Assembly: GCA_033442325.1 (NCBI GenBank)
Contig: JAWQFM010000017.1
Span: 1,140,036 to 1,204,035, forward strand
DNA: 64,000 nt
Origin: Salpingoeca rosetta
Lineage: Eukaryota; Protista; Choanoflagellata
Reading direction: 5' to 3'
Below are positions 2,401 to 37,553 of this stretch, in pieces. Both the position numbers and the translations under genes were made by a program. Below the pieces are notes generated by a model that ran no database searches, had not been told where the DNA came from, and saw only the letters and a program-made list of their open reading frames with translations. Within the stretch, counting starts at the first letter, position 1. Every line of letters begins with the position of its first letter.

Positions 2401-3074
2401 GGTTGCCGTTGCTTGCTGTATTGGTTGGTGTCACCAGACGTGTGGCCTTGTGGCGGGTGGGTGGGAGTGCCAATCGAATCCTCCTTCGCCAACAACAACT
2501 TCCTCGTCTGCTTCTTCCCGTTGCTGAGGATTGTTGAATGATTTCTGCAAATGTTCGCGCTTGCCTTCGTGCTTGTTTTGTTTGTTTGCATCCATGCTCG
2601 CAGGCAAACACAAGCATTCTTCTCCTTCCTGCCTGTTTGTGGTGTTTGTGCGTGGCGTGTGCTTGACCCAAGAAGCTGGGTTGTGCTGCTCCTGGCTCTC
2701 TCGCTTCCTCTTTTGACCCCCATAACCAACGACACTGAACACGAGAACCGTGAGTTCTCCTCTTGTCTTGTGGGTGGACCTGTTGAACGCGGCCCGCAAT
2801 TTAGCAAGCAAGGCAACTCCCTCAGCTCAAGAAGACTCTGTTCTCTTCTTCGACTCTGCGTTCTTCTTTCTTCAGCCAACACCACGTTCTCCCTCAATTT
2901 ACGCCTACAGTACAACCACCGCACAACAACGCTGCTGCTGTTGACCAGTGGCAGAAGCACTGCGCTGCGTGAGTGAGTGTGTATTTTGTGCTTGGTGGCC
3001 GTCAGCCAGCGGTGCATTGATATTGCCTGCAGGCAACACACCAAGCGGGCAAACCGTGACGAAACGGCGTCAGC

Positions 3075-3922
3075 ATGGCACCCGTTTCAGTACACCCACC
3101 ACAGCACAGCCATGCACTTCGATGGCTCTCCACATTGCTCCTTGTTCTTGGCGTTTTCTCTTCTCTTTTGACCACAGGTATGGTGTGTGGATGGTGTCAT
3201 GCAAACTGCGCAGCCGTTGCTTCTTCTTCCTTGTCTCGTGCTTGCTGTTGTGTGTTTTGGTTGTTTTCATCTCTACAACGCAGTCAATACACACATGCTT
3301 GTTTGCATTGCTACTTTCATCAACATGAGCCAACTGCTCTTGTCCCATGCACTGCACACCCCATGTATTGCTTACACACACACACACACACACGCACACT
3401 TGCACACACACACTTGCCCACGCACAGCGGCCGGTTCGGCCATTGTGCTCGCCAACAACTTTGGAACATGTGGCATTGAGCCTTCCCTCGCCATCGGCAA
3501 GTGCGGCGCCGTGCACGTGTCCTTGGACTCATGGGAGCTGCAGCTTCAGGCACCGGCCGACCTGGAATGCAAGTTCTACCACGACAGCGATTGCTCTCAA
3601 GTCGTTTCTTCGGGCCTCTCACCTGACATCTGGAGCACACCATCCTCCTCCATCCTTGCCAGAACAAACGTGCGCTTTTGTAAATGCTTAAATGGCCCTG
3701 ACTGTTGTGCTTTCGTTGGTCGCTTGCTCTGTTGAACTTGCCCGCACACCTTCACAAGCTCTTGACGGTTCGTCTTCTTCGCCTTGCGACACACACACAC
3801 ACACACACACTCACGCACAAACACTCACGCACAACACTCACGCACACACACACACACACACACACTCACGCACAACACTCACGCACACACACACACACAC
3901 TCACGCACAACACTCACGCACA

Positions 3923-3957
<35 letters not shown>

Positions 3958-6900
3958 TCACACACGCATAACGCACACCTTCTCTCCCTCTCTCCCCTCC
4001 CCCTCCAGGTTGGCAAAGGTCGCATGCCCGTGTACTTGCGGTGCGTGGGAACACAGACGGGAACAGAGGTGGTGCTCAAGAACACATGGAACGGGATCAG
4101 CACGATCAACGAGGAAGAGTCCCTGCTTGTTGTCGAGAACCACATTGCATGCGACCCAGATCGTGAGTTGTTCACGCAGTATGTGCTGCAAACCAACTTG
4201 AAACACACCTTGAAACACGGCCTGCTGCCCGCCCTTCTGTGATTCTTGCCCCTGCTCCACCGTTTGTCCCACACACACATACACACACACACACATTGCT
4301 TGTCTTGCTCCTCTTTCTCATCACCCCCCACCCAACAAACACACACATGCACACATTACATCACCCAACACAACACCACCGCCAACAGCTGACCGCGTCG
4401 TGTTCTCGTTGAGCGCGAGCGCAACAAGCGTTGTGGAGGAAGATACACCCTCCATCACCTTCAACGTCAGCAGAACAGGGCCCACCGACGATGACGTGAG
4501 CGTTCGCCTGGCCGCCGTTGATTTCCAGGCCTCGCGCAACGCGGACTACACGCGCGCATCCGCCTCCCGGCTCATCACGTTCGCTGCGGGCCAGACTTGG
4601 GCGCAGGAAACCATCCCCATCCTGGACGATGCCTTTCCGGAGCTTGCAGAGTCGTTTGCGCTTGCCCTGACGCAACCGACCTTGTTGACAGGCTCTGGCC
4701 GCGAGGTTGTGCTTGAGGATGGTGCTGCCGTCGTCCTCATCACCATCCAGCCATCCGATGACCCGCACGGTGTCATTGCTCTCCGCAACCCCAACACCAC
4801 CATCGCCCTGACTGAGCCCCTCTCTGGTGCCACCACCATCACCATCCCGCTCGTGCGCACGGGCGGGACCTTTGGCTCCGTCACTGTGGACTGGATCATT
4901 GACGGCGATGCACAGACCCACGACTTTGACGCGCTGCAAGGGTCTGTCACCTTTGGGTCTGCGGAGGCCGCCGCCAACATCACCCTGCAACTGCGCGCCG
5001 ACAACCAGCCTGAGCTGCTGGAACAAAGCGTGTTCCGGCTGCTCACCGCGAGCAACGGCGCGACCGTTGACGCCGCAAGCGCAGCCCTCACCCTCACGGT
5101 TGACCCAAACGACGACCCACACGGCGTCGTCTACGTGCAGGCAAGCGAGCAGCAGCTCATCATGCACCACACTGGTCAACGCGCGCTGCGCATCCTTGCC
5201 CAGCGGTCTGCGGGCACGCAAGGCGCTGTCAACGTCACGTTCTCCGTCACCTTTGGCACGAGCAACATCATCAGCAACAACCTCGCCTGTCTGCAGCAGT
5301 TTATCATCGCCGACAGTGTCACCATCGCCATCTCACATGGCGCCGCCAGTGCAGAGGCAGTTCTTCCCTTCAGCGACACCGTGTTGCTGGAGCAAGGCGC
5401 CGGGTTTTGCCTGCAGGCAACGGCAGTCGCACTGGCAGATGGCTCCCCTGTCCTCGTGGCGTCGGATTCTTTGTCGCCTCGCCTCAACACATCGCGTGTC
5501 GACGCCCGCGTGGTTGTCGCGCGTGCGTTTGCCAACGGCGTGGTTGGCTTTGCCGGCACAAGCATCAACCAGGCAGAGCCCGCCACCCAGCAGCAGGACA
5601 TCACCATCCTGCTTGTGCGCTCTGGCGGTGGTTATGGTACACTTGACGTGCAGCTTTCTCTCACTGGGAATTCAGAGTACGCCGTGCCTGGCCAGGACGT
5701 GACCCTGTCATCTAACGTCTCCCACTTTGATGCTGGCGACTCCCTCCACGAGCTCACCGTCTCCGTGCACCCCGACAACATCCCTGAGCTTGCCGAACAG
5801 TTCTTCGTCACCGTGGCGGACATTCCGTCCGGCCGCGCCGCCATCGACTCGGACTCCTCTGTTCTCACCGTCACTGTCCCGGTGCGCTGAGATGATGACA
5901 TGGGTTGTTTTTGGAAGTGAAATGGATGTCTCGTGCTCCAATAATTTCCATACACACACACACACACCCAATTTGCATGCATCCGCTTGCACACAAACGC
6001 ACACACACACACTCACATGCACACACACACGTATACATACACACTCTCACAAATGCACATGCACACACATACACACTCACATAAACACATGCACACACTG
6101 TACTGCACTGCAGAAAAATGACGACGCAAATGGCGTGCTTGGGTTTGAGGTGACGGGCTACCGTGTGTCGGAGACGGACCCGAGCGGACATGTGGTGCTC
6201 AACGTGACAAGGACACGCGGGGCGTTCCAGTCTGTGAGCGTGGCGTTTGCCACGAGCGACGGCACGGCGGTGGCCGGGACCAACTACGAGGCGCAGAGCG
6301 GGACGCTTGTGTTTGGGGAAGGGGAGCGGAGCAAGGAGATTGCGGTTGGGGTGCTGGATGCGGGGGCACCGCGGGCGCCTGTGCGAACGCTGACGGTGAC
6401 GCTGGGACAAGTGATTGGCGGGGCGCGGGTGGCGGCCGCATCTGCCACAGCCACCGTCAACATTCAGTCCTGCCACCACTGCAGCTTCAACATCATCGAC
6501 TCGCCGTCCCCGCTCGTGACAGCGGAGCCAGCAGGCACCAACACGGCCGACGTGACGGAGGTGGCTATCCCTGTGCGGCGAACCCCAGACACCTTTGGGC
6601 CCGCCACGCTCCACTGGACGGTGTTTGAGAATGACCCTGCCACTGGCGACATCACTGCCGTGCAGGCGAGCATGGACTTTGTTGACGCCACTGGCGCGGT
6701 GTCCTTCGTGCATGGCCAGCAGGATGCCGTGGTTGTGCTGCACATTCGCAACGACAACGAGCCTGAATTGACAGAGCGCTTCAGCCTGGTGCTCGTCTCA
6801 GTGGACGGTGATCCATCGCTTGGAATCAACGCAACCCTGCCCATCGACATTGTTGCCAACGACCTGTGCTTTGGCAGCTTCTCGTTCTCGGCATACCCTG

Positions 6901-9900
6901 CGGCAGTGACTGTGTATGAGCCCCAGGACCCGTCCAGTGGTGCTCGCGTGCACACCTTCAACATCACACGTGCGCGTGGCACATTCAACAGCGTTCGTGT
7001 CTCGCTGGAGCTGCAACTCCTAACGGCAGGCGACAGCGCTGCAACAAGCGACGACGCTGTTCTGCTCACACCATCTGTTGTCTTCGCCGAGGGCCAGACC
7101 TCTGCTCTTGCGCGCGTCTCCGTCACCAACGACAACATCCCCGAGATTGCAGAGAGCATCATTCTGCGCGCAGCAAGCGTGGCTGTGCTCAACACAAACG
7201 AGACGGTCACCTCAGACCTCGTCACCATCGACGACACGGACGACTACATTGAACTGGTGATTGCGGAGAACGACGACGCGCGGGGTGTTGTGTCCATCCG
7301 CCCGCTCGCCCTCACTGCCAGTGAAGGCGGTGCGCCCTCCGATGTACAGTTCACCCTCACCCGCACACGTGGTGTGTTTGGCGTCGTCACGGTGACGGCT
7401 GGCCTCGTGTCAGTTGCGAGTGGCACTGCTGGCGTGAACGCAAGCAACGTCGCCACTCTCTCGGGCCCGGAGCAAGACGCCTTCCTTCCCATGCCCACTG
7501 TCACGTTTGTCGAGGGCCAAACCGAGGCTATGCTCTCTGTTGGCGTTGTGGATGACGACCTGCCGGAAGTGGACGAACAACTGCGCGTTGTCCTCGTCAA
7601 CACGACCGGTGGCCTAGTCGTCGGTGCCAACGACACGGCTGTGCTCACCATTGCTGCCAGCGACGCAGCGTTTGGCGACCTGTCCATCACCAACGCCTCC
7701 ACCCTTGCTGTGCTGCACGAGTTGGAGGGTGAGGACGCCATGTACGAGCTGGAGGTTCTGCGTGGTGGCGGTGATTTTGGCACCATCACGGTGGAGTGGC
7801 ATCTGGAAGTGGTCACGCCTGGCGACGGTGGTACCACGTCCTCACCCCTCGTCCTTGGCAGTGACATCTCCCCATCGTCTGGGACGTTGACGTTTGCGCC
7901 CGGTCAGCGACGCGCTGTGGTTGCGCTCACCGTGTACGCCGACAACATGCCAGAGACGAACGAGGAGGCCTTGCTCGTGCTGAGCAGCCCGACAAACGGC
8001 GCGCAGCTGCAGGCCAACGCCACGTCACGCCGGGTTGTGATTGAGGCAAACCAGGAGCCGCACGGCGTGGTCTCGCTGGCAGACGCCACCATCATCGTGG
8101 ACGAGGGCGCCGGCACGGTGTCCGTGGCCGTGACGCGCGAGAGTGGCGCCATTGGCCAGATCAGCGTCGATGTCACCGTGCGTGGCGTGTCCGCTGCGGG
8201 CGGTGGTGTGGATTTTGCAGCCACCAACACCACGCTGGTGTTCGCGCCGGGTGTTCGCCAGCTGGCGCACCCCATCACCATCATCGACGATGATATCCCA
8301 GAGCTGGACGAGACGCTGGTTGTGTCGCTCAGCAACCCCACGGGCGGCGCGCTGCTTGGCGCCATCACTCAGACAGAGATCACCATCTTCAACAACGACG
8401 ATGCGTTTGGGCTGGTGCGCGTCGCCAACACCACGCCCGCAGATGTCGCGGCGTTTGACGAGAGCGCAGCAGACAGCAGCATTGTGTTTACAATTGTACG
8501 CGATGCGGGCGCCTTCACCTCCATCTCCGTGCCCTGGTCCCTGCAGCAGGTGGCCGGGTCATCTGCCGCCACGCCCGATTTCGATGTCACCGCTGGTGTC
8601 GTGCAGTTTGCAGAGGGCGAGCGTGTTGCCACCATCACCGTGCACGTGCTCGATGACGACGTGCCCGAGGACGACGAGACGTATCAGCTGGTGCTCAGCA
8701 GCGTCACTGGCAGTGCGCGCGCACATCCGCAGCTTGGTCGCCACAACGTCACCATCGCTTGGAACGACAACGCCTTTGGCATCATCAGCGTGCAGGCGGG
8801 CGCGCGCAGCCAGCGCGTTGCTGAGAGCGATGGCAGCGTCTCCATTCCTCTGCAGCGCACGCAGGGCACGTTCCGCCGTGTTGGTGTCAACTGGGTCATT
8901 GCCGTGGCCACGGTGAGCTCTGGTGACGTGAGCCCCACATCCGGCACCGCGTACTTCGAGCCCGGCAGCGACACCGCCGCCATTGTCATCTCCATCACAG
9001 ATGACGCAATACCAGAGGTTGACGAAGGGTTCACAGTGAGCCTGCAGAGCGTCACCGTTGCCGGTGCCCTGCTTGTGTCCGATTTGAATGCTCTGCGTGC
9101 AGATGTCACAATCGTTGCCAACGACGACCCGCACGGCGTGATCAGCCTGCGCAGCGGCAGCGGCACGCTTGCGCTGACCAGCGGTGGCCTGCGCTCACTC
9201 CGCGTGACACTCGACCGCAGCGGTGGCACCATCCTTCCCATCGACATCACCTTCTCCGTGCTCATGTCACTGCCGCCTGGTGGCGTACAAGCCAGCAGTG
9301 GCAGCGGCGGCGGTACAGCAGAGCGCTCTCCCTGCCAGGCCCAGACCATCGTGTCCAGCCCGCAGACGGTGACCATGGGCGACAAGCTCGCGTCACGCGT
9401 CGTGAGCCTGCTGATTGAGGAGACGGCCGTGCTGGTGCAGGACGCCGTGTTCTGCATTCAGCTCGACTCTGTCGTGCTCTCCCGCGATGGCTCGCACACC
9501 AACACAAGCACGGGCCCGTCACCAAGCTTGGCGGCGTCCATGGATGCCCGTGCACTCAACGTGTCTGTGAGCAGTGCGTATGCCAACGGCCTTGTGGCCT
9601 TTGGCGACACTGCGGGGACCGTGCACGTGACGGAGGCAGCAGACCTTGACGCACCCGAGACACAGCTTGTGCCTGTGGTGCGGAGCGACGGCAGCTTCGG
9701 CGATGTGGCACTGGCGTGGGAGATTGTGCCCTCACACACGGGTGACTTTGACGCTGTGAGTGGGACCGTGATGCTGCCGTCTGGGCAGTCGTTTGCGTCC
9801 ATTCCCATCACCGCCGTGAAGGAGCAAGTGCCAGAGCTTGACGAGCTGTTTCAGCTGCGCCTGACGGGCATCACCAGCGGTACAGCAACGCTGGGCGCCG

Positions 9901-12283
9901 GTGTCAACGACACACGCGTGCAGCTGCTCATCCCCGCCAACGATGATCCGTTTGGCGTGCTTGGGTTTGAGGTGACGGGCTACCGTGTCTCGGAGACAGA
10001 CCCGAGCGGACATGTGGTGCTCAACGTGACAAGGACACGCGGGGCGTTCCAGTCTGTGAGCGTGGCGTTTGCCACGAGCGACGGCACGGCGGTGGCCGGG
10101 ACCAACTACGAGGCGCAGAGCGGGACGCTTGTGTTTGGGGAAGGGGAGCGGAGCAAGGAGATTGCGGTTGGGGTGCTGGATGCGGGGGCACCACGGGCGC
10201 CTGTGCGAACGCTGACGGTGACGCTGGGACAAGTGATTGGCGGGGCGCGGGTGGCGGCCGCATCTGCCACAGTCACCGTCAACATTCAGTCCTGCCACCA
10301 CTGCAGCGTCTTCCTTGATCCTACGCAGGACCTGTTTGTTGGCGAGGAGCCTGCATCCCCTGATCCCGCCGATGCCACAGGCATTGACGTGCGTGTCCTG
10401 CGACAGCCAGACAGCTACGGCTCTGCGCTTGTTGGCTGGCGGGTGGTGCATGCAGGCACCAACACGCTTGCAAGCGACGACTTTGTGGATGCCAATGGCA
10501 CGGTGACGCTGGAGCACGGGGAGACCGAGACGACGCTCCGCCTGCTGCCGCGCGCTGACGCCACCCCAGAAACAGCGGAGGCATTTGAGGTTGAACTCAC
10601 CAGCGTGAGTGGGGACCCGTCTCTCGGCAGTGACGATGTGCTGGAGCCTGTCACGCGCAATGTGCAGCTTGAGCCCAGCGACCAGCCGTATGGGTTGTTT
10701 CGTATCGGCACCGCATATGTGCGCGACGGCAACAGTGGCGCGGTGAACTCTGTTGCCGGTACTGCCGATTCCGTGTCCACACAGGAAGGCGACACGGTGC
10801 AGGTGACCATTGATCGGCAGCACGGCACGCTCGGCGCTGTTGACGTGTACCTGATGCTGCTGTCCCTTGCGGGCGAGGTTCCTGCCGACAACGCTGCAAC
10901 CCCTGGCGATGACATTGCTATTCTGCACAGTGCTGGGATTGGTGCTGTTCGGTTCGCAGATGGGCAGACGCGTGCCAACGCAACGCTTGCCATCATCGAC
11001 GACGGCCTGCCTGAGCTGGACGAGCGTCTGGTGGTCGCCCTGTTGAATGCCACCATTGTCGGAGACACCCTAGCAGCGAGCATGGATGCGCGGCGTGTGC
11101 GTGTGTCCAACACGACGCGTGAATCTGGCCTCACCATTGCTGTCGAAGAGAACGACGACGCACATGGGGTGTTTGAGCTCTCTGCACCGTCCCTCGCCAA
11201 CGAAACGTTGAGCGAAGGTGCCGTGGCCACTGTGACTGTTGAGCGCAGGCGCGGCACGTTTGGCGCTGCTGGTGTCTCTCTCGTGCTTTCTTCAGTTGTT
11301 GATGACGACAACACGGCGACAACGGACGCTGTGCTCTCGCAAACAGACATCACATTTGTGGAAGGCGAGAGCTCTGTGCAGGTGACCCTGACCGTCCTGG
11401 ACGATGCTGTGCCCGAGGATACAGAGTCGTTTGTGCTGTCCTTGTCTGCGGGCAGCGTGACTGGCGGTGCGCGGCTGTCACCAAACGCGTGGGCCACACA
11501 GGCGGCGTTCTCAGTTGCGCCCAACGATGATCCCTTTGGCGTGTTCACGCTCGCGCAGCCGCTGTACAGTGTGGACGAGCCAGCCAACGTCACTGTCACG
11601 GTGCTGCGGTCTGCTGGACTGTATCGCACCGTGTCCATCCCGTGGCAGGTGAATCAGAATGCCACATCTCCAGATGTCGCACCAAGCAGCGGAGTGGTCG
11701 TGTTCGTGCCGGGCCAGACAGAGGCGTATGTGCAGCTCACTGTCATCGATGACAGTATTCCTGAGGACCGTGAGGACGTGGTATTCACGCTGCAAGCGCC
11801 CACGTCGCCCGTTGCACGCATCGAGCGCAACACCACCACCATCCGCATTGCCGCCAACGACTTTGTCAACGGCGTGCTTGAGTTTGAACCTGGTCTGAGT
11901 GTGCTACGTGTGGGCGAGGACGTGGGCTTGTTTTCCATCACCGTGCGCCGGCGTGGCGGTACGCAGGGCACCGTGTCTGCGGCGTACGAGACGCTTGACC
12001 TGACTGCAACGCGCAGCAGCAACGACTACGCGTATGCCCAGGGCAGGGTGGAGTTTGCGCCTGGCGAGACGGAGCAGACCATTTCCCTCATTGTGGTTGA
12101 CGATGACGTTCCAGAGGATGATGAGCGGTTTCTTCTCGTCCTCTCTGACGCCCAGGGCGGCGCCGTTCTTGGTCTCTCCTCCCAACGTAAGCACGCGCGC
12201 ATGTGCGTGTGTGTGTGTTTATGTTCGTGTTGGTGTGTGTGTGTGTGTTGTGCTTGTGTGTATATGTGTGTGGTTGTGCTTGT

Positions 12284-12314
<31 letters not shown>

Positions 12315-15300
12315 GTAGTGCGTGTGTGTGTATGTGGACACGCTCATGTGGACACGCTCATGCGTTATGCGTTCCTTGGTTGCATCATCTCACACTTACA
12401 TTCACACCATCACCTTCCCACCACCCCTACCCATCACTCCCCCCCCCAAACAAAACCAAACACAGTTGAAGCTGAGGTTGCTGCGTCGGAGCGGGCCAAT
12501 GCCGCTGCTGTTGCCGCAGCCGATCTGGTCACGCTGCGCGAGATGCAGGTGACAAACCTCTCGGCAAATATCACTGCGCTCGAAGCAAAGCTGGACCGCC
12601 TTGCTGATGCCATTGCCAGCAACGAGACAAGCGCTGATGCTGTTGCTGCAGACCTTGCTTCCGCACGTGCGCTCCTGGCAGAGGAGAACGCCAACCTGAC
12701 TGCGGCACAGACACTGGCGCAGCAGCGGCAGGCCAGCCTCCAGGCAGCCTCGTCCGTGCTGGACTCCGCGCTGGCCACACGCACGTCCATTGCAGAGCAG
12801 TTGGATGACGCCACGACGGCGCTGAACTCCGTGGTCCGACGCGTGGTGGACTTCACACAGGAGCCAGACACCATTGATCTGGCTGCACAGCTGCCGGCGC
12901 CGGAGAGCGAAATCGAGTACTATGCTGGCCTTGTTGTCACCGCCGTGTACTACACGCAGCCAGACAGCCCCACACCCCGCTCCATTGCTGTGCGCGAGGG
13001 GCTTGGCTTTGGTGTCGTTGGCTCCGCCTGTGGCGGCACGTGCTTCACGGGACTGCACGAGGTGCGACTGGCATTCAACACCACCGTCTCCAACGTCGTG
13101 TTTGAGAACAGCTTCACAGACTCGGAGGAGCCCCTCGGGCCTCTCGCTGTCACCATCTATAACCTGGATGGCACCGCCATCGACACCGCCATGATGCAGC
13201 GGGACGCCGTGTTCAACAACGCCTACAACATCTCTGCTGCGTTCCCCGGCGTTCGCATTGGCGGCTTTGCCGTGCAGGCAACCGACTCGATTGTGCGCTT
13301 TGCCTCTGTTTCCTTTGATCAGGTGGAGGGTGGCAGCTATGAGGATGCGCTTGCACGCGTCAACACGTATTCGTCACAGCTCTCCGCTGCCGATGTTGCC
13401 GTGTTTGACGCCCAGCAGCAGGCAGGGCTCGCCGCCCAGGCCTACGTGCAAGCGGCTGCAGCGTTGTCGCAGCAGTCTGCAGAGACAGCGGCAGCACAGC
13501 AGCAGGAGCAGACGCTCAGCCAACAGGCCAGCGCACTCAACGCCACGTTGCTCATGTTGCGCACGGACAGCCGGCAAACCCAGTCCCTGCTCAACTCGCA
13601 GCGCCAGCGCTACGCGGACCACACCTTGCTCCTGCAACAAGCCGAGAACGAGCTCATCCAAGCGCAGGAGCAGGCAGACCAGCTGGCCGCTGCCGTGACA
13701 GAGGCGCAGCAGGCGGCCGTGTGCCCTGACCTGCAGTGCGTGTCCAGCATCACCGTGGAGATTGCACACAACGATGATGCCTTTGGCGTCTTCTCCATCA
13801 ACGCGACTGCGGCTGTGGCCTCGGCCACCGCAGGCGAGGGCCAGGCCTTTGTTGTGCCCGTCGTGCGTGCTGCCGGCACCTTCCGCGCAGTCTCACTGCA
13901 GTGGCGCCTCAACTTTTCCTCCACAGCGTCACCAGCAGACATTGCTGCGCCCACCACGGGAGCACTCACGTTCTCGTCGCGTCAGACGAGTGCTGAGCTT
14001 GTGCTTCCCATTGTTGACGACGCAGTGACAGAGGAAGCAGAACACCTGAGCGTGATCTTGACAAATGTGTCCCTGGGCCGGGTTGAGGACCCCAGCTCGC
14101 TCACACTCACCATCGACGCCAGCGATGCCGTTGGCATCTGCACCCCAACATCGTGCGCCAACAACGCCACATGCGTGGATGGCGTGTTTGACGTCACGTG
14201 CCTGTGCCAGCCTGGTTTCGCCGGCGACCGCTGCGACATCAACATTAACGAGTGCGCAAACGTGACCTGTTTCAACGGCGGTACCTGCGCGGACCGGATT
14301 AACGACTTTGACTGCGCGTGCATCAATGGCTTCCAGGGCAAGCTGTGCGAAATCTCACCGCTGTGCGACCAGGGCGAAACCTGGTGCTTCCGCAGCAACG
14401 CGTGCGTGCACACCGCCATCTCGCAGCAAACATGCCAGGTGCCGTGCGACAGCGAGACGCACGTGTTCTGCTTTGCGTCCCAGACGTGCCGCCCCCGCGT
14501 CGTTGCTGACATGCCATGCCCCGTTCCTGGACCCGCGCCGCTCATCACAGCACCGTTCGCCATCAGCGTCGCCGAGGACACGGCTGTGCTCACGTCGCTG
14601 GCGAGCGTGTACGCCACCCCGCGGCACCGCTGGGGTGAGAACATCACCTACTTCATCGAAGATGTAGGCATGGGCGGCGGTGCTGCTGGCGACGTTGCCA
14701 ACACAACGGTTGCTGGCCCCTTTGCCATTGACACGCTGACCGGTGTGATCTCCCTCGTGGGGCTCTTGGATCGGGAGCAGGTGGACGCGTACACGCTCCT
14801 CGTGACTGCTGTCGACTCTGCACCAGACCACAAGACAAACAGCACCACCGTCACAGTGGTGGTGACCGACGTCAACGACAACAGCCCCACGTTCGCGCCC
14901 GCCACCCCAACCGCGGTATCCGTGCTGGAGAGCGCGTCTGTGGGCACACAAGTCGCGCAACTGGTGGCGAGTGACCCGGATGCAGGGGCCAACGGCAACG
15001 TGCGCTTCACACTTGACGCCGGCAACGCACTGGGGTCATTCCAGCTCGACTCGTCATCTGGTGTGCTCAGCGTTGCTGGCACGTTGGACGGCGATCAGCA
15101 GACGTCGTACACGCTCACCATCTCCGCACACGACCAAGGAACACCTCCGCTCACAACCACAACAACGCTGGAAGTGAACGTGGTCGTGTACCCACCACCC
15201 GCCTTTACAGACGGAGGCAGCTACACAGCAGGGTTCCCTGAGGAGGCAACAGGGCTGGTGGTGCGTGTTAGCGCTACAGTCCAGCACCCGTACAGCAACG

Positions 15301-18300
15301 ACGCCGTGATGTACGCCGTTGTGTCTGCGGAGACAAGCGAGGGTGATGACGTGACTTCACATGTTGGCGTCAACAGCACCGGGCACATCCACGCCACGCA
15401 GGCACTGGACCGCGAAAGTTACGCGTTTGTCGTTGTCACTGTTGCTGCCACAGATTTTGCACCGCTGCGCAAGACCTCGCTGGCTGTTGTGAACGTGACG
15501 GTGGTGGATGTGAACGACAATGCGCCCGTGTTCGACAGCAGCGTTGCAGATGGGGTGCTGGTGTTCGTGCGGGAGGAGGACGCGCCAGGCACCCTGGTCA
15601 CAGACGAGCTCACGGCACAGGACGCGGACCAGGGCGACAACGCCCGCATCACGTACAGCATCGTGAGTGGAAACACGGGCAATGCGTTCAGCATCGACGC
15701 AGACACGGGCGTGGTGACGCTTGCCGCACAGCTCAACGGCAGCGTTGTGGACGAGTACGTGCTTGGTGTTGAGGCGCGTGACAACGCGGCGCACGTGAGT
15801 GACCAGCTGTCTTCGGTTGTGAGCGTGAACGTGAGCGTGGTGTACTTTGGGGCGCCCGTGTTTGGGGCACCGTCGTACCGCGGGAACGTGAGCGAGGACG
15901 CAGGCGTGGGGACGGGTGTTGTGCGTGTGTGTGCGACGGCACAGCACGACGGAGCAGACCAAGGGATTGACTTTGCGATTGTGAGCGGGAACGTTGGGGG
16001 TGTGTTTGGGCTTCGCATGGGCAGCGACAACGTGAGCGCGGAGGTGTATGTGGCGGGGCCGCTGGACCGCGAGACGCGCGGGGTGTATGTGCTTGGGGTG
16101 GTTGGGCGGGACCGAGGCCCGCTGAGGAAGCGGAGCGGGGTGGGCGTGCGTGTTGATGTGCTTGATGTGAACGACCACGTACCGGTGGTTGTGGGTGCCG
16201 ATGGCGGGGAGAGCGGTGGGTGGCCCGAGCCTGTTGTGCGGATGGAGGTGCGCGAGGAGGCGAGCGTTGGGAGCGTTGTTGGGGTGATTGTGAGCGAGGA
16301 TGGTGATGCTGGAGCGTATGGGACGGTGACTGTGTCTGTTGGTGCGACGCGTGTTGGCGGCGGGGACTTTGGAGGGGTGTTTTCGCTTGACGGCGGGAGC
16401 GGGCGGGTGCTCGTTGCTGGCGTGCTTGATGGGGCTGAGACGCCCGAGTATGTGGTTGAAGTGATTGCGCGGGATGGCGGGGGCCTGACCTCCAACGCCA
16501 CCCTCATCATCACCGTCATCTACTTCAACGGGCCCCGGTTCAACGCCACTTCCTACGCTGCAACAGCAGCGGAAGACGTGGTTGTAGGTGCCACCATCGT
16601 CAACGTCTTTGCGGTTGCGCGTCACGACCAGCTAGATCGCACCATCGACTACAGTCTCGCAGACTCGCTTGGACTGTTCGACGTGACTGCTGATGGCCGC
16701 ATTGTTGCTGCTGCGCCACTTGACTACGAGACAGCCACATTGCACGAACTGACGGTCGTGGCGACTGATCACGGCCCATTGCGCAAGTCCAGCAACGTCA
16801 CTGTCGTGGTCACTGTGACTGATGTGAACGACAATGCACCCGAGTTTTCGCCGCCCTCCTACACATTTACCATTCGGGAAGACGCGAGCGAAGGCGTTGT
16901 TGTTGGCAGCGTGAATGCGTTTGACCTTGATTCTGGCGCCAACGCCGCTCTGCACTTTAGCACCGACTCGCCCGCATTTGCTGTTGCTTCGCCCTCAAGC
17001 AGCGGTGTCACGACCGTTGACGTTGTGGTGACGGCATATGGGGCTGTAACCCTGGACGGCCTGCAAGAGCCAACAATTACCTTGACAGTGACTGCCAGGG
17101 ACGGTGGCAGCCCTGCCCTCTCCTCCACGGCGACAGTGACCATCGATGTGACGCTTGTGCCGACGGTGCAAGCGCCATACTTGAAGCTGTACAACACGCT
17201 CAGCGCAGCGTCTGGGTTTATCCCAGCCGAGTTTAGCAGAGACGTGTCGTCGCTCGCGCTGGTGTCGGACTTTGACACGCGTCACGGCGTGTGGGACATC
17301 AGCGTGGATGACGGGTCCACGTGGACACGTGTCAACACTGGCGCGCGATGGCGTGACAACACGGCGCTCGTGCTGCGGACGGGGGAGAGCAGCAGCACTC
17401 TGTTGCGGTTTGTGCCCACGGAAGGATTTGCTGGCGTTGCCACGGTGCATGTGCGTGCGTACAACGGGGACAACGCCACCATCACTGGCGCTGCTGCAGG
17501 TGCTGCTGCCGATGCACTCGTTGACGTGGGCGCAAGCCCCGATACCTTGCATGATGTCAGCGGCAATACCGCCCTGGGCGTTGTGTTCGTCGCCGCCCCG
17601 CTCAGCAGCGTGCAAGTTGCAGAGAGCACGAACGTGACCGTGGACCTGCCAAACCTGCTTGAAGACACATCGCTGCTGCAGAATGTCGGCGTGCAGCTGA
17701 CATCACTCCTGCAAGGTCACCTGCAATTTGCCACGGTGAGCGGCCCCGCGACGGGCATGGCTGCGCTCACCACTGGCGGCTGCGATGGTACCGGTACATG
17801 GTGTAACAGCACGGCCGTTGCTGTGATGTTCCCAGACGATGTCGACACGCTCGTGCAGCCGCGCGATCACGGCATCGTCGTTGAGAGCGTATCGGAGAGC
17901 GCCGGTGTGTGGCAGAGCCGAGCAGCGTCCGTGACTGGGTTTGAGGAGACACTTGTAGGCGATGTGGTGCCGCTGCAGTCGCTGCTGCGGTTTGTGCCGG
18001 CGGCAGAAGAGAATGGTCTGTTTGAGATGGTGGTGCGCGGGTGGCATGGAAAGCTGCATGCGCTCGCACGGCAAGCGAGCACGACAGCCCACACCATCAC
18101 CATTCGCCAGAGTGTGGTCGCAGTTGCAGATGCCCCACGTGCGCTGACTGCGAACGTGACGCTGGCGCCCGTGCCATACGAAGTGACAGCGCAGACGGCG
18201 AACGGATCGCGCGTTGACGAGAGCATTGCTGGGCATGCGGTGGATGCAGATGGGCAGGCCATTGGCCTTGCTGTTGTTGGCGTCGCAAACTGTATCACAA

Positions 18301-21300
18301 CAACAGCCACAGCAACAAGCAGCAGTAACGGTGACAGATGCCGCGGATCGTGGCAGTATCTGCTTGATTCGACGCAGGAGTGGCGTGCGTTCCCACTGGA
18401 TGCCAGCGACCAGAAGGCGGTGCTGCTGGCGCCCCACTCGCGTGTGCGCTTCGTCCCACTGCCCAACTACTTCTGGCCACGCGGCAATGCCTCGGTGTGG
18501 CTGCGTGTGCGCTACTGGGATATGAGCGTGGGCCGAGCCGGTGACACGGCTATGCTTGCAGACGCCTCGGCACCGCAGCAGCTGCTGTTCCCAACAGCCT
18601 TCAGCAGCCGCGTTGTGAGCGTGTTTGTGGACCGCCTTGGCTGTGACGGTGAGGTTGGCAGCCAGCTGTCCGTCGATGCGTGCGGGGTGTGCGGCGGAAA
18701 CGGCAGCGCGTGCGCTGGGTGCGATGGCGTGCTTGCGTCCAATGTGCAGGAGGATGCGTGTGGGGAGTGCGGTGGTGATGGCTCGTCCTGCATGGGGTGC
18801 GACCTTGTTCCGCTGTCCAATGCGCAGGTGGACGAGTGCGGCATCTGTGGCGGTCAGAACCTGAACAAGGACTGCGCTGGCGTGTGTTTTGGGGTGGCGT
18901 CGCGAGACGACTGTGGCGCCTGCTTTGGCGGAGACGCAGAGCGCCAAACACCCGACCTCGACAAGGATTGCGATGGCGTGTGCTTTGGCGCTGCGTTTGT
19001 GGACGACTGTGGCGCGTGTGTTGAAGGCGCAACGGGCCTGAGTGCCAACTACAACAAGGACTGTGCTGGCGTGTGTTTTGGTGGCGCGCAGATCAGCGAC
19101 GTGTGTGCGCTGCAAGGCGTGTCGTATTGCGGTGAGCCCGTGCTCGACTGCAGTGGTGAGTGCTTTGGTTCCCGTATCGTGTCGAGCTGCGGTGATTGCG
19201 TGCAGCCGGACAACGCGACGCTCCTTGACTGCGCCGGCGTGAGTGGCGTGACACCTCGTGTCGTGCCCGTATCCTCTGCCTCTGTGCGCTTCACAATCGC
19301 TGGGAGCGGTTTCCCGCCAGATGTCGGCGCACGCGACGTGACCTGCCGTGCCGTCAGCAGCAGTGGCCGTGGCAGCGTCACTGGATATGGGTGGGTGGCG
19401 TCTTCGACCACGATCACGTGCGTGTTCTCGACGCTGACCGTCGGTGATTATGACCTTGAGGTGGAGCTGCACGGGTCTGCCCTGTCATCGTCACCATCAT
19501 CATCATCATCATCGTCACTTGCCGTTGCTGTGGTGAGTGATGCTGCATCTGTTGGCGCCCCGCCCACGACCAACGTCAATGCGTTCCCTTACGACACGCA
19601 GACGTTCAACCTCTTTGCCGTGACGCCGTCCTCTGCCCCACTTGCCAATTTGAGCGAGGCCGTGGACGCTATTCGCGTGTCCGGCGCGCTGTCGTCGTTT
19701 GGCCCTGCAGACGAGACCACAGGGTGCCTGTTTGTGACGAGTGACACGGGCCTGCTCGGTGTGGTCTCTGGGCAGTGGTTTGCGCGGCGTATCAACTGCG
19801 TCGCTGGGCCGCTGCAGTTTGCGCGACAGATTGAGATTGACATTGAGGATGACGAGCAGCAAGCGTTCACCACGCTGGATGCTGTGGAGAGCCACCTGCG
19901 CCAGGCCCGCCCCGACATTGCCAGCGTCACCTTCACTGTGAGTGGTGATGGCGACGCGGCCTCGGGCAAGCCGCTGCCCACCGGCAGCAGCGTGCTGGTG
20001 GAGTTCTCAGCGGACCTGAACCAGATTGCGTGCTTGGAGGCATCGATGGCCACCATCAACGCCCTGTTTGGCCTCTTCCCACGCGTCTCCAGTGGAAGTG
20101 CTGGAAGTGCTGCTGATGCTGATGCAAATGCGGTCCCCACGCTTGTTGGCAGTGACGTCCTGTCACTGTCATCTTCCGAGGTCGTGTGTGCCGTGCCTTC
20201 AGTGCAGCGCTCAGCGACCATGGAGGTGATGCTGGTGCACCAGGGTGTGGTGGCGGCTGCTTCAGGCACCACGCCCACTGTCACGTTTGTGCACCGCGCT
20301 GCACAGGCCAGTGCCCGCTTCTCTGCCTCTGGCCGCCACCTTGTGGTTACGTTTGACGTTGGCGTGCTGCCTGTGGAGCCGTGTGCCGCAGTGTTCACGG
20401 CGGCATCACGGAGCGCGCTGGATGCAACCGCGTGCACGTGGACGACGCACACACTGACCGTTTCCCTGGGCCGCAACGCAACCCTGCTGCCTGGCGACCG
20501 CGTGTGGTTTGCACCTGTGGACACCAGCGGTGATGTGGCAGCGGACACCCTCAGCACAGGCGCAGGCATTCACGTGGCCGGTGAGCTGCACAGCTACGCC
20601 GTGTCTGGGTCTGTCGTCGTTGGCCTGCCTGATGACTACCAGCCCTCCATCCCCCGCTTCACGCTGCCGCAACAAGTACGGGCGTGCGCAGGGCTGCTGC
20701 TGGATGCCAGCGCATCACACGTGGCAGCCGGGCGTCCAGCCACGTTCCACTGGAGTGCACTGGCCCACGGAGGCGAAGATACGACCGCGCTTGAAGCGCA
20801 CCTTGCCAGCGTGTCTGGTAGCAGCGATGGCCCTGAAGGCGTCGTGGTGGAGGTTGCAAGTTCCCTCCTGCGTGCGGGCACAACATACACGTTTGGCTTG
20901 GCCATTGAAGACGCGCTGGGCGTGCGCAGCAGCGTCGTTACGGTGGACACGACGGTGATGGTACAGGGCAGCGTTGGCGGTGGTGCACAACAGGTCGCGT
21001 CGCTTGAGATCCTTGGTATTCCGCCTGTCCTGCATGCGTCGTCAGATCTCACCGTCCGTGTGCGCCCCGTTGCGCCGCTGCACGGGAACACGTGTGCGGG
21101 CGAAAGCCTTGGCACAGCGATTGCTGCTGCTCTTGGTGCTGCGAGCGGCACCAGCGCAGATGTGCAGTACTGCTGGCAACTCTCGCCGGCCCGCGCGTCC
21201 AATGGCGGAGCGCCGCTGGCTGTTGCTTCTGCATGTGCGCCAACACCGTGGTTTACAGTTTCGGGCACACTGCTGCTGCCCCATCAGCAGCACACGCTGA

Positions 21301-22888
21301 CGGTGACGGTGCGAGTGACATCGGAGGATGCCGAGGCACCCGTGCTTGCGTCCACCAGCACCGTGTTTGACGTCGTGCCAACGCCGCTTGAGGCGAGCGT
21401 GCTTGGCGGTGACTTGCTGGGCGGGCGGCGCACGGTGCCATTGGACGCCACCATCAGCTTGGATGCGTCTGTGTCCTCTGATCCCGACGCCACGGACGAG
21501 CTGGAGCTGTTTGGCTGGCGGTGCGAAGACATTGCCCTGAGCCAGCCATGCAGCACGACAGCAAACGGCAATGTGCCCAGCGTGCTGCTCTTCCCTGCCA
21601 CGCCGCAGCTGTCGCAGGCTGCGGCAGACTTTGGTGCCGGCAGCTACCGCTTCACGGCCACGTATCGCAAGGGCGGCCGCTTTGTGGACGCACGCGCCGT
21701 GGTGGAGGTGGTGGAAGCGCCAGTCGCACCCCAGCTGCGCGTGTTTGGGGTGGCGCAAGGGTATGTGCCCACGCCCACAGAGCACGTGTTCCTGCCCCAC
21801 GCCGTGGTCAACCCGTCCCTGCCCGTGACGGTTGTCGTGGAAGTGACACACGCGTCCGCGCTCGCATCTGCGACATGGTCCGTGGTCGCCGACAGCAGCA
21901 GCGGCAGCGGTGGGAATGAAGATGAGGAGCCGTTGGCGTGGCTTGACTTGGAGGCAACCGCTCTGACGCCACTCACGTACACGCAGGCAGAATTGGCTGC
22001 ACTGGTGACGTTGGACGACGGCACCCAGCGCACGTTCCTGCAGCTCACCCTGCCCCCAGATGCTGTCGTGTCTGGCGCAACGTACCGCTTTAGGTGCACG
22101 GCAGCGACGGCCGCTGAGCACGGGTTTGCCGAGGCGACGGTGGTGGGCAACCACGTGCCGTCTGGTGGCGCCCTGGATGTGGTGTCGTGGACAATGACGA
22201 ACAATGGCATGGGCGTGACACGCGCTCGCCTGACTGCTCAGGGCTGGGGTGACGCTGACCTGCACTATCCGCTGATGTATCGCTTTGGCGTTGGCGCTGA
22301 CCCAGCCACGCGCGTGTGGCTGACGACGTTTGATTACAGCAGTCGCCTCTCTGGTGTGGTGCTGCCTGCTCCCGCAAGCAACACCACCACGCACGTGTCT
22401 GTTGTGCTGCAGGTGCGCGACAGGCTTGGGGCCACCGCGGAGTCGACGGTGGAGGTGGCGACCAGCACAGCAACAACAGCCGGCACAGGAACAACCCCAT
22501 CGGTGGATGCGGCTGCGTTGGCAGCCAACGTGAGTGCTGCGTTGGACGCCGGCAACTGGCCGCTGGCGGTGCGTGTTGGCGTTGAAGCTCTGTGGATGAC
22601 AGGCGACTCCACAAACGCTGCAGTGGTGGTGGACACGGTCGCCGGCGTTGTCTTGGACAGCGTGCGCGCTGCCCTGTCGCTTCAGTCTGGCTCCTCATCG
22701 TCTTCCTCCTCTGCCTCTTTGACAGACGGGGAAGCAGACTTGTTGCTGTCAGCAGTGGCTGTCGTTGCAAACAGGCGTGCGTTCCTGTCCGAAACAACAC
22801 GCGGTCGTGTGGGTGAGTTGACGGAACACATTGGCGCCATCCTCATTCCGGCTGCGGAGGAGGAAGGCCTGCTCAACAGCAACAACAA

Positions 22889-22919
<31 letters not shown>

Positions 22920-25415
22920 CGGAGGAGGGCGAGCGGCGCTGTGGATGGCGGGTACGGCAGCAGCAGCAGCGTCACGCCCCAGCAGGGCCTTGCGATGACT
23001 GACATTTATTCGAGCGCCATTGCGCTTGACTCGTTCACGGCCACCAACGCCGCCCTCAAGGCGCGGCTGAACACACTGCTGCAAGTGATTGCGCGCGTGG
23101 AATGTCGTCGCCTGTCCTTCAAGGCACGGCCGTACCAGCTGGAGAATGACCTGTTCCACTTGGAGGTTGCCGTGCTCTCTGGCGCCAGCGTGCAGACTGT
23201 CGACACGACGCAACTCGACTACGGCAGCGACTTTGAAGCGCGCTTCGAGCGGTGGGCGTGCGATGACCCCGCCCCTGCAAGCCGGTGCGCTGGCGTGTGC
23301 AGTGCCGCTGTTCTCTTCAACGCGGACATGACAACGGCGTTTCAGGACGAGCCTGCGTTCCGTCGCGCGAGCCCGCTGCTTGACATGCGCTTCTACGACC
23401 AGACCTCCTTGCACACGGTGCAGGTTGCGTCGCTTGACCCGGCGCTGTCGCTGTTCCTGCCCATCACCGAGGCAGCGCCAGCTGGCACGACAGACAGTTC
23501 ACCTCAGCGTCGCAGAAGGAGCAGCAGTAGCAGCAGCAGCAGCGATGACGTGGCTGCGCACGACCGCGTGAACACACCACATGTCGTCACCAGCAGCAAC
23601 GTTGACAGCAACAGCAGTAGCAATGGCGCGAGCAGGGATGGGAGCGATGCTGTGCGCGTGCGTCGGGAAGGCCCCTCTGTGTCAGCACCGGAGTTTGAGT
23701 GTCTTGTGTATGACGCGTCGCAGCATCTGTGGTTGGCGGATTCCCGCTGCAGCTACTTTGCGCCCAACACGGGGGAGCAAGGCGTGGACCAGCTTGAGTG
23801 CCGCTGCACAGCTGGTAACCTACAGGTGGCCGGGTACTACTACGCTTCCTCAACGACGGGCGAGGTGAATGTCACGGTGCCAGCAGCACCTTCAGGTGAC
23901 GTGCTTGCCTACCACCTTCGCGCGTACACATACGAAACGGAGACGAATGCCGAGTCTGCGGCGTGGCTGACGGGCTTTGTGGGCACATTCTACCAGTCCA
24001 TGGTGCAGTTGCTCTCCCTGCAGGACAGTCAGGTGGCAGGCGTCGAGGTTGTGTCTGTCATCAACGGCACGGGCAACCGGCAGACGCTGGTGGTGGACTT
24101 TTATCTCGTTGAGCCTGACGGCAACGGCGGCAATGCGACGGTGCTGGACGGGTATGTTGAGGACCTCAACACCTTGATTGACACGCGCCAGGCACGGTTC
24201 GTGTACGACTCCACGACGTTTGAGCTGTACAACGTGACCATGGTGTCTGGTGGCGGAAACACAGGCGGAAGTGGCAGCAGCGGCTCGCTCGGTTCTGGCT
24301 TCTGGGTGGGCATTGCGTTTGCCATTGCCGCCGCCCTGGCCATGCTCGTGGCGCTCGTGCTGCTGCTGCAGGGGCGAATTGGCGGACGCGAAGGAAAGGC
24401 GAAACTCGGCGGCAAGAGCGTGGACGACGAGAGCACGCTGGAGATGGTTGATCTTGGACGGCGGTCGCTTGCCGCGTCGTCCAACACCAGCAGAAGGTCC
24501 TCTGTTGCGCAGCTGCTGCCGCGGTTCATGCGACGCACCAGCAGCGTGGTCATGCCGGAGCAGCTGGTGGAGGTGGACGAGGAAGGCGAGGAGGACGAGG
24601 GCGCGCAACTCACTGGCGACGACGCACGTGATCAGGTGGCCCAAACCGCCTCCACGCGCCTTGCATGGACACGGCGCTCATCCTTGTCGACAATGGCCAC
24701 GGCTACAACAGCAGCAACAGGCGCTGGTGACGGTGACGGCGAGCATCAAGTGAGCGGGGGTGCTGCTTCCACTCCTGCAACTACACCTGCGCGCCGGCTC
24801 TCCGTTGCATCTGCGACGTCACCGCAAGTGGACGAGACTGAATTCAGCAAGGGCGGCAGCAGCGATCGCACTGGTGGTGGTGATGATGATGATGATGGCG
24901 CCAGCGGCACGCACGGGGCCGCACTGCCTTTCTCTCCGCGAAGCAGCGCGTCTTTGGGTGGCGATGGCCAACAACAACAACAACAACAACAACAACAACG
25001 ACAGCGGCAAGACCCGCTGGCACCACTGACATCCACGACAACACCACCTCGGGGCATGCCTCCACGTGTGCCGCGACTGCCGTCGTCGTCATCATCATCC
25101 TCGTCGTTGTCGGCTGCGCCTGGTGGAACTGTGCCCGCACCGTCTGCTCTGACACTGCGACCAGCCCTTCGCGTGCCGTCGCTGCGATCGCGACAAGGCC
25201 CCGGTGGTTCTGAGCCGAGCACGCCTGGTACGCTGCCGCAGTTGCGCCCAGGCATCCGCGCACCACAGAGCTTGCCACGGCTGCAGCCACGTGCGCTCCC
25301 TCGCGTCAACCGTCCACCGCCGCCGCGTCGGCCATCCCAACAGCAGCAGCAGCGAACAGTGGTGGCACCGATTCCGGAGGAGAGCGATGCTGATGCCAAC
25401 GAATCCCAGGCATGA
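3075..25415 (+). CDS. Giant (~7,000 aa) type I membrane protein: Calx-beta repeats, EGF, cadherin repeats, Cys-rich repeats, IPT, REJ/GAIN-GPS-like region, single TM
   Basis: Proposed exons 3075-3177, 3428-3669, 4009-4162, 4389-5881, 6114-12186, 12466-25415 (all GT-AG, 21,015 nt = 7,004 aa + stop). Signal-peptide-like start (WLSTLLLVLGVFSSLLTTA). About 21 DDxxPExxE / NDDxxG Calx-beta repeats; 2 EGF (CANNATCVDG..., DINECANVTC...); DxNDN/LDRE cadherin motifs; REJ motifs (LDASVSSDPD, YPLMYRFG); TM FWVGIAFAIAAALAMLVALVLLL at ~24300-24370. The three small 5' exons are less certain than the rest. Confidence 0.85.
6131..6485 (+). repeat. Intragenic direct repeat, copy 1 (355 bp, one Calx-beta domain)
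   Basis: Near-identical to 9953-10307; about 4 substitutions seen by eye. Confidence 0.95.
9953..10307 (+). repeat. Intragenic direct repeat, copy 2 (355 bp)
   Basis: Near-identical to 6131-6485; offset 3,822 nt. Confidence 0.95.
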
Positions 25416-36636: not shown

Positions 36637-37553
36637 NNNNNNNNNNNNNNNNNNNNNNNNNNNNNNNNNNNNNNNNNNNNNNNNNNNNNNNNNNNNNNNN
36701 NNNNNNNNNNNNNNNNNNNNNNNNNNNNNNNNNNNNNNNNNNNNNNNNNNNNNNNNNNNNNNNNNNNNNNNNNNNNNNNNNNNNNNNNNNNNNNNNNNNN
36801 NNNNNNNNNNNNNNNNNNNNNNNNNNNNNNNNNNNNNNNNNNNNNNNNNNNNNNNNNNNNNNNNNNNNNNNNNNNNNNNNNNNNNNNNNNNNNNNNNNNN
36901 NNNNNNNNNNNNNNNNNNNNNNNNNNNNNNNNNNNNNNNNNNNNNNNNNNNNNNNNNNNNNNNNNNNNNNNNNNNNNNNNNNNNNNNNNNNNNNNNNNNN
37001 NNNNNNNNNNNNNNNNNNNNNNNNNNNNNNNNNNNNNNNNNNNNNNNNNNNNNNNNNNNNNNNNNNNNNNNNNNNNNNNNNNNNNNNNNNNNNNNNNNNN
37101 NNNNNNNNNNNNNNNNNNNNNNNNNNNNNNNNNNNNNNNNNNNNNNNNNNNNNNNNNNNNNNNNNNNNNNNNNNNNNNNNNNNNNNNNNNNNNNNNNNNN
37201 NNNNNNNNNNNNNNNNNNNNNNNNNNNNNNNNNNNNNNNNNNNNNNNNNNNNNNNNNNNNNNNNNNNNNNNNNNNNNNNNNNNNNNNNNNNNNNNNNNNN
37301 NNNNNNNNNNNNNNNNNNNNNNNNNNNNNNNNNNNNNNNNNNNNNNNNNNNNNNNNNNNNNNNNNNNNNNNNNNNNNNNNNNNNNNNNNNNNNNNNNNNN
37401 NNNNNNNNNNNNNNNNNNNNNNNNNNNNNNNNNNNNNNNNNNNNNNNNNNNNNNNNNNNNNNNNNNNNNNNNNNNNNNNNNNNNNNNNNNNNNNNNNNNN
37501 NNNNNNNNNNNNNNNNNNNNNNNNNNNNNNNNNNNNNNNNNNNNNNNNNNNNN
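36637..37553. other. Assembly gap (~917 N)
   Basis: Run of N flanked by CA repeats; probably hides THOC5 3' exon(s). Confidence 1.

Follow-up and report, generated by a model that had tools for sequence, protein, structure and literature searches.

Split domains in bacterial RTX adhesins project ligand-binding domains off the axis of the protein (PMC12077191; bioRxiv 10.1101/2025.09.30.679566); the break in such a domain falls either after its first strand or just before its last strand or strands (bioRxiv 10.1101/2025.09.30.679566). Here we describe a putative arrangement of this kind in a eukaryote, the choanoflagellate Salpingoeca rosetta. It lies in a stretch of 64,000 nucleotides (positions 1,140,036 to 1,204,035 of contig JAWQFM010000017.1, NCBI GenBank assembly GCA_033442325.1), which we call the window and whose own numbering is used throughout. 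The gene in question encodes an annotated protein of 7004 residues (P0001), and the 20th of its Calx-beta repeats is broken open by an insert of 424 residues: a predicted helix of about 130 residues (CC1), a beta domain of 160 residues (the tip), a second predicted helix of about 130 residues (CC2), and a CxxxxC motif. The explanation that we favor as a whole, and consider likely, is that the split repeat bears a head resembling a carbohydrate-binding module (CBM) on a stalk of two paired helices about 19 nm long; the insert would then probably be a lateral binding arm of fixed length. Arguments about the origin of animal cell adhesion draw on choanoflagellate giants of the cadherin family, whose functions are unknown (PMC4054682).

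Functionally, the closest documented system is that of the RTX (Lap-type) adhesins, among them Aeromonas hydrophila AhLap, that of A. salmonicida (PDB 9q5u) and Vibrio cholerae FrhA. In P0001, as in an RTX split domain, a domain of ligand-binding type appears to bud from an interrupted beta-sandwich extender. Unlike the RTX adhesins, however, P0001 is predicted to be a eukaryotic type I membrane protein rather than one secreted by a type I secretion system (T1SS), its host domain is Calx-beta rather than BIg, and its split domain and module are separated by a pair of helices, each of about 130 residues (about 19 nm). In P0001 Pfam finds only Calx-beta, EGF, cadherin and REJ domains, with no RTX retention module, beta-roll or T1SS signal, and the gene carries spliceosomal introns in the S. 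rosetta genome; the protein would work like the RTX family without being a member of it. Between the tip and the RTX adhesin CBM there is no detectable sequence similarity, and the identity in their structural alignment is 16%. The word “coiled” is absent from the RTX survey preprint (bioRxiv 10.1101/2025.09.30.679566), and we found no paper joining RTX adhesin, split domain and coiled coil. What P0001 presents is the split-domain display of a binding module described in bacterial RTX adhesins, here in a eukaryote and with an added, predicted coiled-coil spacer of invariant length.

The point of insertion has a precedent in the Calx-beta family itself. In the NCX/CALX proteins the F-G loop of CBD2 is long and tolerant of insertions, extends one or two short helices off the sheet and is the site of a splice cassette (PMC9820601). 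Repeat 20 is opened at the same point, between strands F and G. The NCX loop, however, consists of tens of residues and is cytosolic, regulatory and mostly disordered, whereas the loop in P0001 holds 424 residues, is predicted to be extracellular and would carry a folded domain on a long stalk. Globular domains split by a long antiparallel coiled coil are also familiar from the SMC and Rad50 arms and the dynein stalk, which end in a hinge, a zinc hook or a microtubule-binding domain; these are intracellular ATPases whose coiled coils transmit conformational change. In P0001, by contrast, the host would be an extracellular beta-sandwich, the tip is CBM-like and there is no ATPase motif; the resemblance is of design only. 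Streptococcal antigen I/II (A region, V domain, P region) is a surface adhesin with a lectin-like beta-sandwich tip on a two-stranded stalk contributed by both flanks, in which an alpha helix pairs with a polyproline II helix and which forms the main axis of the protein. Both stalk strands of P0001 are instead predicted to be alpha-helical, and the stalk would be a side branch of a Calx-beta/cadherin rod.

Long extracellular Calx-beta arrays with interspersed modules likewise occur in ADGRV1 (VLGR1) and FRAS/FREM. The extra modules of ADGRV1 lie between repeats and are not known to lie within one. When we searched with the flanks of the insert, only FAT-like cadherins and ADGRV1 were retrieved, and no Monosiga brevicollis or animal protein with the same architecture. 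None of the long proteins retrieved (3850-12250 residues, ADGRV1 included) matched the insert except P0001 itself, and no insert-free ortholog was found among the long proteins searched. Our literature searches found no description of the arm. An earlier note on this DNA, made by a model from the letters alone, had claimed that no such arm was known; this stands for Calx-beta and cadherin proteins in the searches, but the general principle is known in bacterial RTX adhesins (PMC12077191).

P0001 has 21 Calx-beta repeats according to a hidden Markov model (HMM) that we built from clean repeats, and the interrupted one is domain 20 of that series (Table 1). In its best stretch the match of this repeat to the Pfam profile PF03160 runs over positions 14-100 of 119 and stops where the repeat is broken, after the F strand at 12186. 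A query of 262 residues ending at that strand scored 105.8 bits against PF03160 (cut-off 27, two matched stretches), which by profile places the repeat in the Calx-beta domain family, and the 427 residues downstream of the F strand gave no Pfam match at E values up to 1. When 14 paralogous repeats were aligned with P0001 2579-3130 (alignment A2), each opened one gap of about 425 columns after GGAVLGLSSQ, and their last strands landed beyond it on ITVEIAHNDDAFG. Because the paralogs gap after the F strand and resume at the last strand, the insert sits in the F-G loop, with the displaced G strand at 13740-13769. AlphaFold2 (AF2) was run on repeat 20 plus insert with the paralog alignment, which had no depth over the tip and left it unresolved; repeat 20 itself came out as a confident Calx-beta sandwich with a predicted local distance difference test (pLDDT) of 85-96, a strand at model residues 537-543 matching the G strand, and Calx-beta structural matches extending across model residues 2..548. 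The repeat is thus modeled as a complete seven-strand beta-sandwich that includes its terminal G strand. It also contains the acidic motif VVDDDVPEDDERF, a putative Ca2+-binding loop. The earlier note had a Calx-beta repeat at about position 20 split and its last strand displaced, with an intron at the start of the insert; the Pfam stop at 100 of 119 and the single gap in 14 paralogs bear out the split, the intron is there (279 nt, GT..AG) and is skipped by the annotated protein, and the coordinates given proved accurate to about 25 nt.

The module is not confined to S. rosetta. An exhaustive HMMER search with the tip, against 1.84 billion cluster representatives, gave four real relatives, two marginal bacterial matches and nothing else. 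All four relatives come from metagenome assemblies: TARA Oceans (L005-L007), a JGI sample (L001-L003), the SOLA coastal station (L004) and an activated-sludge sample (L009). Their contigs share one gene order (Calx-beta repeats, insert, one Calx-beta repeat, EGF, cadherins), have eukaryote-type introns and a GC content of 55-61%, and presumably derive from uncultured choanoflagellates. A metagenome locus search with alignment A4 returned only an already-known contig. Recurrence of the whole module in four independent metagenomic lineages is more than chance. In both L001 and L004 one continuous open reading frame (ORF), without an intron, leads from the F strand of the Calx-beta repeat into CC1, and the architecture is therefore independent of the S. 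rosetta intron and its microsatellite. The activated-sludge assembly is ENA ERZ937805, while the gene family otherwise looks marine; arm-bearing relatives may also live in fresh or waste water.

Intron positions within the insert vary by lineage; one in L005 lies at 579-705. The intron at the insert start is common to S. rosetta and L005; L005 and L009 (before 240) share one just before the RTVDF strand, and L005 has another late in CC2. An intron interrupts the tip in L004 (6788-6889), and in L001 one separates the two Cys residues of the CxxxxC foot (about 12672-12880). That foot was read directly in four lineages, as CPDLQC (S. rosetta), CPDIVC (L004), CPDFQC (L005) and CSDGSC (L009).

Against this variation the lengths are strikingly constant. 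Between conserved anchors, CC1 has 131 residues and CC2 129 residues in S. rosetta, L004 and L001, at an ungapped identity of 17-27%. The L005 insert, spliced at GTGAGT donors, has 424 residues and aligns without gaps to the 424 of S. rosetta; its CC1-equivalent segment is 129 residues, the same as in S. rosetta, a length that rests on the best splice choice, and CC2 of L009 reaches the S. rosetta length through a splice that restores the conserved AVC ending. Across the five lineages the helices contain no indel (subject, for L005 and L009, to the splice choice). The tip is far less free to change, with identities of 41-77% across lineages. Between S. rosetta and L005, the tip differs at a proportion of 0.22 of its amino acids (0.17, 0.13 and 0.44 at codon positions 1, 2 and 3), CC1 at 0.55 (0.45, 0.37 and 0.71) and CC2 at 0.50 (0.41, 0.36 and 0.64); the divergence of the helices is about twice that of the tip. 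Because third codon positions diverge most, the insert is coding sequence under purifying selection, and because it is conserved across lineages it is translated. As judged from these alignments, constraint falls on sequence in the tip and on length and heptad pattern in the helices. Helices that evolve fast without indels would be a clear case from nature in which selection acts on length and not on sequence.

Folded alone with the five-lineage alignment (A5), the tip was modeled as a beta-sandwich with a pLDDT of 64 and a predicted template modeling score (pTM) of 0.67. Its Foldseek matches are weak but uniform (CBM32, CBM29, CBM47, lectinolysin and APC10), and the best structural match is the CBM of a bacterial RTX adhesin; in this model the tip is a jelly-roll beta-sandwich resembling solved CBMs. 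None of the six tip members had a Pfam match at E values up to 10, and no PDB sequence match to the tip passed E 0.2. We hold it to be somewhat unlikely that the arm is real and its tip does not bind sugar, the tip being either a protein-protein module like DOC/APC10 or the discoidin domain of muskelin, or a scavenger of small molecules like the cobalamin-binding DUF4465/BtuJ proteins. APC10 is itself among the structural matches; the others named are CBMs and lectinolysin, and the closest of all belongs to an adhesin. On the model, a ligand-binding module is the most likely identity of the tip, and its ligand is probably a glycan.

Two bacterial matches to the tip were judged too weak and partial for homology: P0006, a Gram-positive FctA-type pilin repeat (E 6e-7 summed over six repeats), and P0007, a 2763-residue Calx-beta protein of Enterovibrio norvegicus (WP_283130576.1; E 4e-4 overall). 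A module repeated five times in P0007 (1184-2060) has 29-32% identity over about 70 residues to tip residues 85-151, and the same tip residues give a weaker repeated match to the FctA-type pilin repeats. These two are the only non-orthologous sequence matches to the tip.

A single heptad register runs the whole length of each S. rosetta helix, with no Pro and 0-1 Gly (none in CC1), and the register falls at identical ungapped positions in S. rosetta, L001 and L004. In these three lineages core position a is mostly L, I, V, F or Y and position d is rich in Ala, in both helices. For four of the six helices, the two of S. rosetta among them, none of 2000 shuffles reached the core hydrophobicity observed, and for L001 CC2 8 of 2000 did; per helix, the six contain 0-1 Pro and 0-3 Gly. 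Sustained heptads with hydrophobic a and d positions and without helix breakers mark both segments as coiled coil at the level of sequence, and the two arms are of matched length and joined at both ends. AF2 builds helices at model residues 109-161 and 167-240 (pLDDT about 70-84) and at 402-413 and 418-528 (pLDDT about 77-87). N-x-S/T sequons stand mostly at non-core heptad positions (three of the four in CC1), which fits an extracellular setting. The model has a five-residue break in CC1 at 12618-12632 (P0001 2740-2744, SNETS), where an N-glycosylation sequon lies about 55 residues up from the base and a windowed scan shows a local wobble of the register; the stalk could have a stutter or a hinge at this point.

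From the exit and re-entry of the chain at a single loop, the compact single-domain tip, the equal and invariant lengths and the heptad phases, we infer that the two helices pair antiparallel, and the arm would project sideways. The heptad phases permit a-d' layers with an offset of two residues from the base anchors, flush from base to tip, an agreement to be expected by chance about one time in seven. Antiparallel helix pairs that pack tightly (“Alacoil”) are known for this pattern of a large residue at a and Ala at d. A helix of 129-131 residues, at about 0.148 nm for each, comes to about 19 nm. The structural inference of the earlier note is supported: its long heptad flanks of matching length reappear as AF2 helices (pLDDT about 70-87) with significant heptads and lengths invariant across orthologs, its beta-rich tip with a Cys pair has a C-x3-C at C2877 and C2881 in all five lineages, the jelly-roll or lectin-like fold that it expected is what the tip model and the Foldseek CBM matches give, and its stalk of about 18 nm is close to our figure.

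Table 1. Features of the split repeat and its insert, in window coordinates.
Feature	Position	Strand	P0001 residues	Remarks
Calx-beta repeat 20, strands A-F	11856..12186	+	2579-2688 + first base of codon 2689	ends LSDAQGGAVLGLSSQ
Phase-1 GT..AG intron, 279 nt	12187..12465	+		exactly at the repeat 20/insert junction; from the sequence and Tandem Repeats Finder (TRF); skipped by the annotated protein
Ascending helix CC1 (predicted)	12466..12854	+	2689-2818	~130 aa; heptads; AF2 helix 109-240 with one short break
Tip domain	12855..13334	+	2819-2978	160 aa; predicted beta-sandwich of CBM/galactose-binding-like type
Most conserved tip motif, GFGVVGSxCxGTC	13005..13043	+		C-x3-C pair, C2877 and C2881; five lineages, alignments A3 and A5
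Descending helix CC2 (predicted)	13335..13721	+	2979-3107	129 aa; heptads; AF2 helix 402-528
CxxxxC motif CPDLQC at the foot of CC2	13722..13739	+	3108-3113	
Closing G strand of repeat 20 and linker into repeat 21	13740..13787	+	3114-3129	VSSITVEIAHNDDAFG
Calx-beta repeat 21	13770..14129	+	3124-3243	Pfam; HMM domain 21; followed by EGF and cadherin repeats

Taken together, the chain would leave the beta-sandwich after strand F, climb a helix of about 130 residues, form a CBM-like beta-sandwich of 160 residues, descend a second helix of about 130 residues, pass the CxxxxC turn and donate strand G, so that the sandwich closes before repeat 21 begins. Most likely the Ala-rich heptad helices pack antiparallel into a two-stranded coiled coil about 19 nm in length. 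This stalk would serve as a rigid spacer, with selection on its length rather than its sequence, and would keep the tip far from the axis of the Calx-beta/cadherin rod, where the distal array of Calx-beta repeats gives way to the membrane-proximal EGF-cadherin-REJ part.

The helices might instead be an oligomerization device, either a four-helix bundle made by two molecules or a domain swap of CC1 and CC2, that zips neighboring filaments together and to which the tip is secondary. Ala-rich a/d cores do suit higher-order helical bundles in general, the pTM of the model is only 0.35, and oligomerization would require exact conservation of length just as much. Yet the best conserved part of the insert is the tip (a differing proportion of 0.22, against 0.50-0.55 in the helices), and because it diverges least we take it to be the business end; moreover, the helix surfaces diverge freely (17-27% identity) and expose N-glycosylation sequons, which is unfavorable for a conserved intermolecular interface. 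We judge oligomerization a distinctly unlikely account of the insert.

Several observations weigh against a paired-helix arm with a CBM-like head. The pTM of the whole model is 0.35 and contact between the helices is not observable in its output; fold searches with the whole model return Calx-beta or single-helix matches, and SMC arms at a root-mean-square deviation of at least 10 Å, with no clean hairpin among them. The heptad signal of L001 CC1 is weak and not significant (307 of 2000 shuffles) because that helix is 38% Ala. The lengths of L005 CC1 and of L009 are less independent than the others because their splices were picked among alternatives, partly for length. Confidence in the tip model is medium only (pLDDT 64, five lineages), and the sequence of the tip does not link it to any CBM or lectin family. 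Finally, RNA support, from two RNA-seq runs sampled at about a quarter depth, amounts to two read pairs, with no splice joints in the sampled reads.

The intron at the insert start begins with GTAAGC, ends with CAG, is in frame and consists mostly of a TG microsatellite (TRF); the spliced protein reads GGAVLGLSSQ-L-EAEVAAS across the junction. Because its 279 nt contain no stop, the raw ORF runs straight through it. Two introns of the gene, made up in large part of CA/TG microsatellite (5990-6099 and 12202-12336), are in frame and free of stops, and ORF-based gene calls on such genomes will hold runs like THTHTH or VCVCVC. The RNA reads of the first run number four, in two pairs (12483-12743 and 12918-13178, both within the insert), and the second run gave none. 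The two contig runs are interrupted at the TG microsatellite; they probably represent DNA, not RNA. An in-frame AG stands at 13700-13701; an exon starting at 13702 would let the 12186 donor bypass nearly the whole insert with repeat 20 still closed.

Such a splice raises another explanation, in which the insert behaves as an optional cassette. Most of 12466-13700 would be missing from the main mRNA, whose repeat 20 would be an ordinary one, and the arm would be confined to an isoform that is minor or made under particular conditions. The intron does lie exactly at the insert start, the in-frame AG joined to the 12186 donor gives GLSSQ-QAQQAAVC, the F-G loop of NCX is a site of alternative splice cassettes (PMC9820601), and the RNA reads are too sparse for any joint. 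The annotated gene model nevertheless retains the insert, the only mapped RNA reads lie within it, and the pyrimidine tract of the candidate acceptor is poor (0.55). An intron at the insert start is lacking in L001 and L004, so that skipping is impossible there in the same way, and five lineages show clear selection on the insert at the protein level. We consider the cassette very doubtful, the least probable of the alternatives still standing. That the whole insert is an intron is ruled out: it is open in five lineages, constant in length and most divergent at third codon positions.

The insert is a discrete, conserved unit that lends itself to expression by itself, and it makes a clear prediction, a ligand-binding head on a rigid 19-nm stalk that branches from the rod, through which the function of the protein can be approached concretely. 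A bolder reading, which we offer tentatively and think unlikely as it stands, is that the arm is a molecular ruler of about 19 nm, by which a choanoflagellate clade sets a glycan-binding head at a fixed lateral distance from a giant Calx-beta/cadherin filament, and that it represents an independent eukaryotic invention, or an acquisition, of the bacterial split-domain design. If this were true, the arm could cross-link neighboring collar microvilli or the cell coat, or capture bacterial prey, and its coiled-coil spacer would be without a described counterpart in Calx-beta or cadherin proteins.

The gene around the insert is read on the + strand, where one ORF of 6562 codons, a read-through of the raw sequence, spans the region (5727-25415). 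P0001, which bears the automatic name “NOTCH2 protein,” was the single protein retrieved by a word search with the insert; it is 100% identical to the insert along its full length and matches the window exactly at 6114-12185 and 12468-25412. Upstream of the insert Pfam finds Calx-beta; downstream it finds one Calx-beta repeat, then EGF, eight cadherin stretches and a REJ domain. The N terminus is a signal-like hydrophobic segment and a single transmembrane segment lies near the C terminus, the features on which we predict a type I membrane protein and because of which the insert region would be extracellular.

Runs of N (assembly gaps) occur at 1417-1516 and 36637-37553, and the second of these explains why the composition profile seems to show a low-GC block at 36-38 kb. 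Within the gene, two copies of at least 300 nt (6131-6430 and 9953-10252), 3822 nt apart, have 99% DNA identity; they belong to Calx-beta repeats 5 and 15 (P0001 about 666-786 and 1940-2060), whose protein text is nearly identical, and could reflect a recent internal duplication, gene conversion or an assembly artefact.

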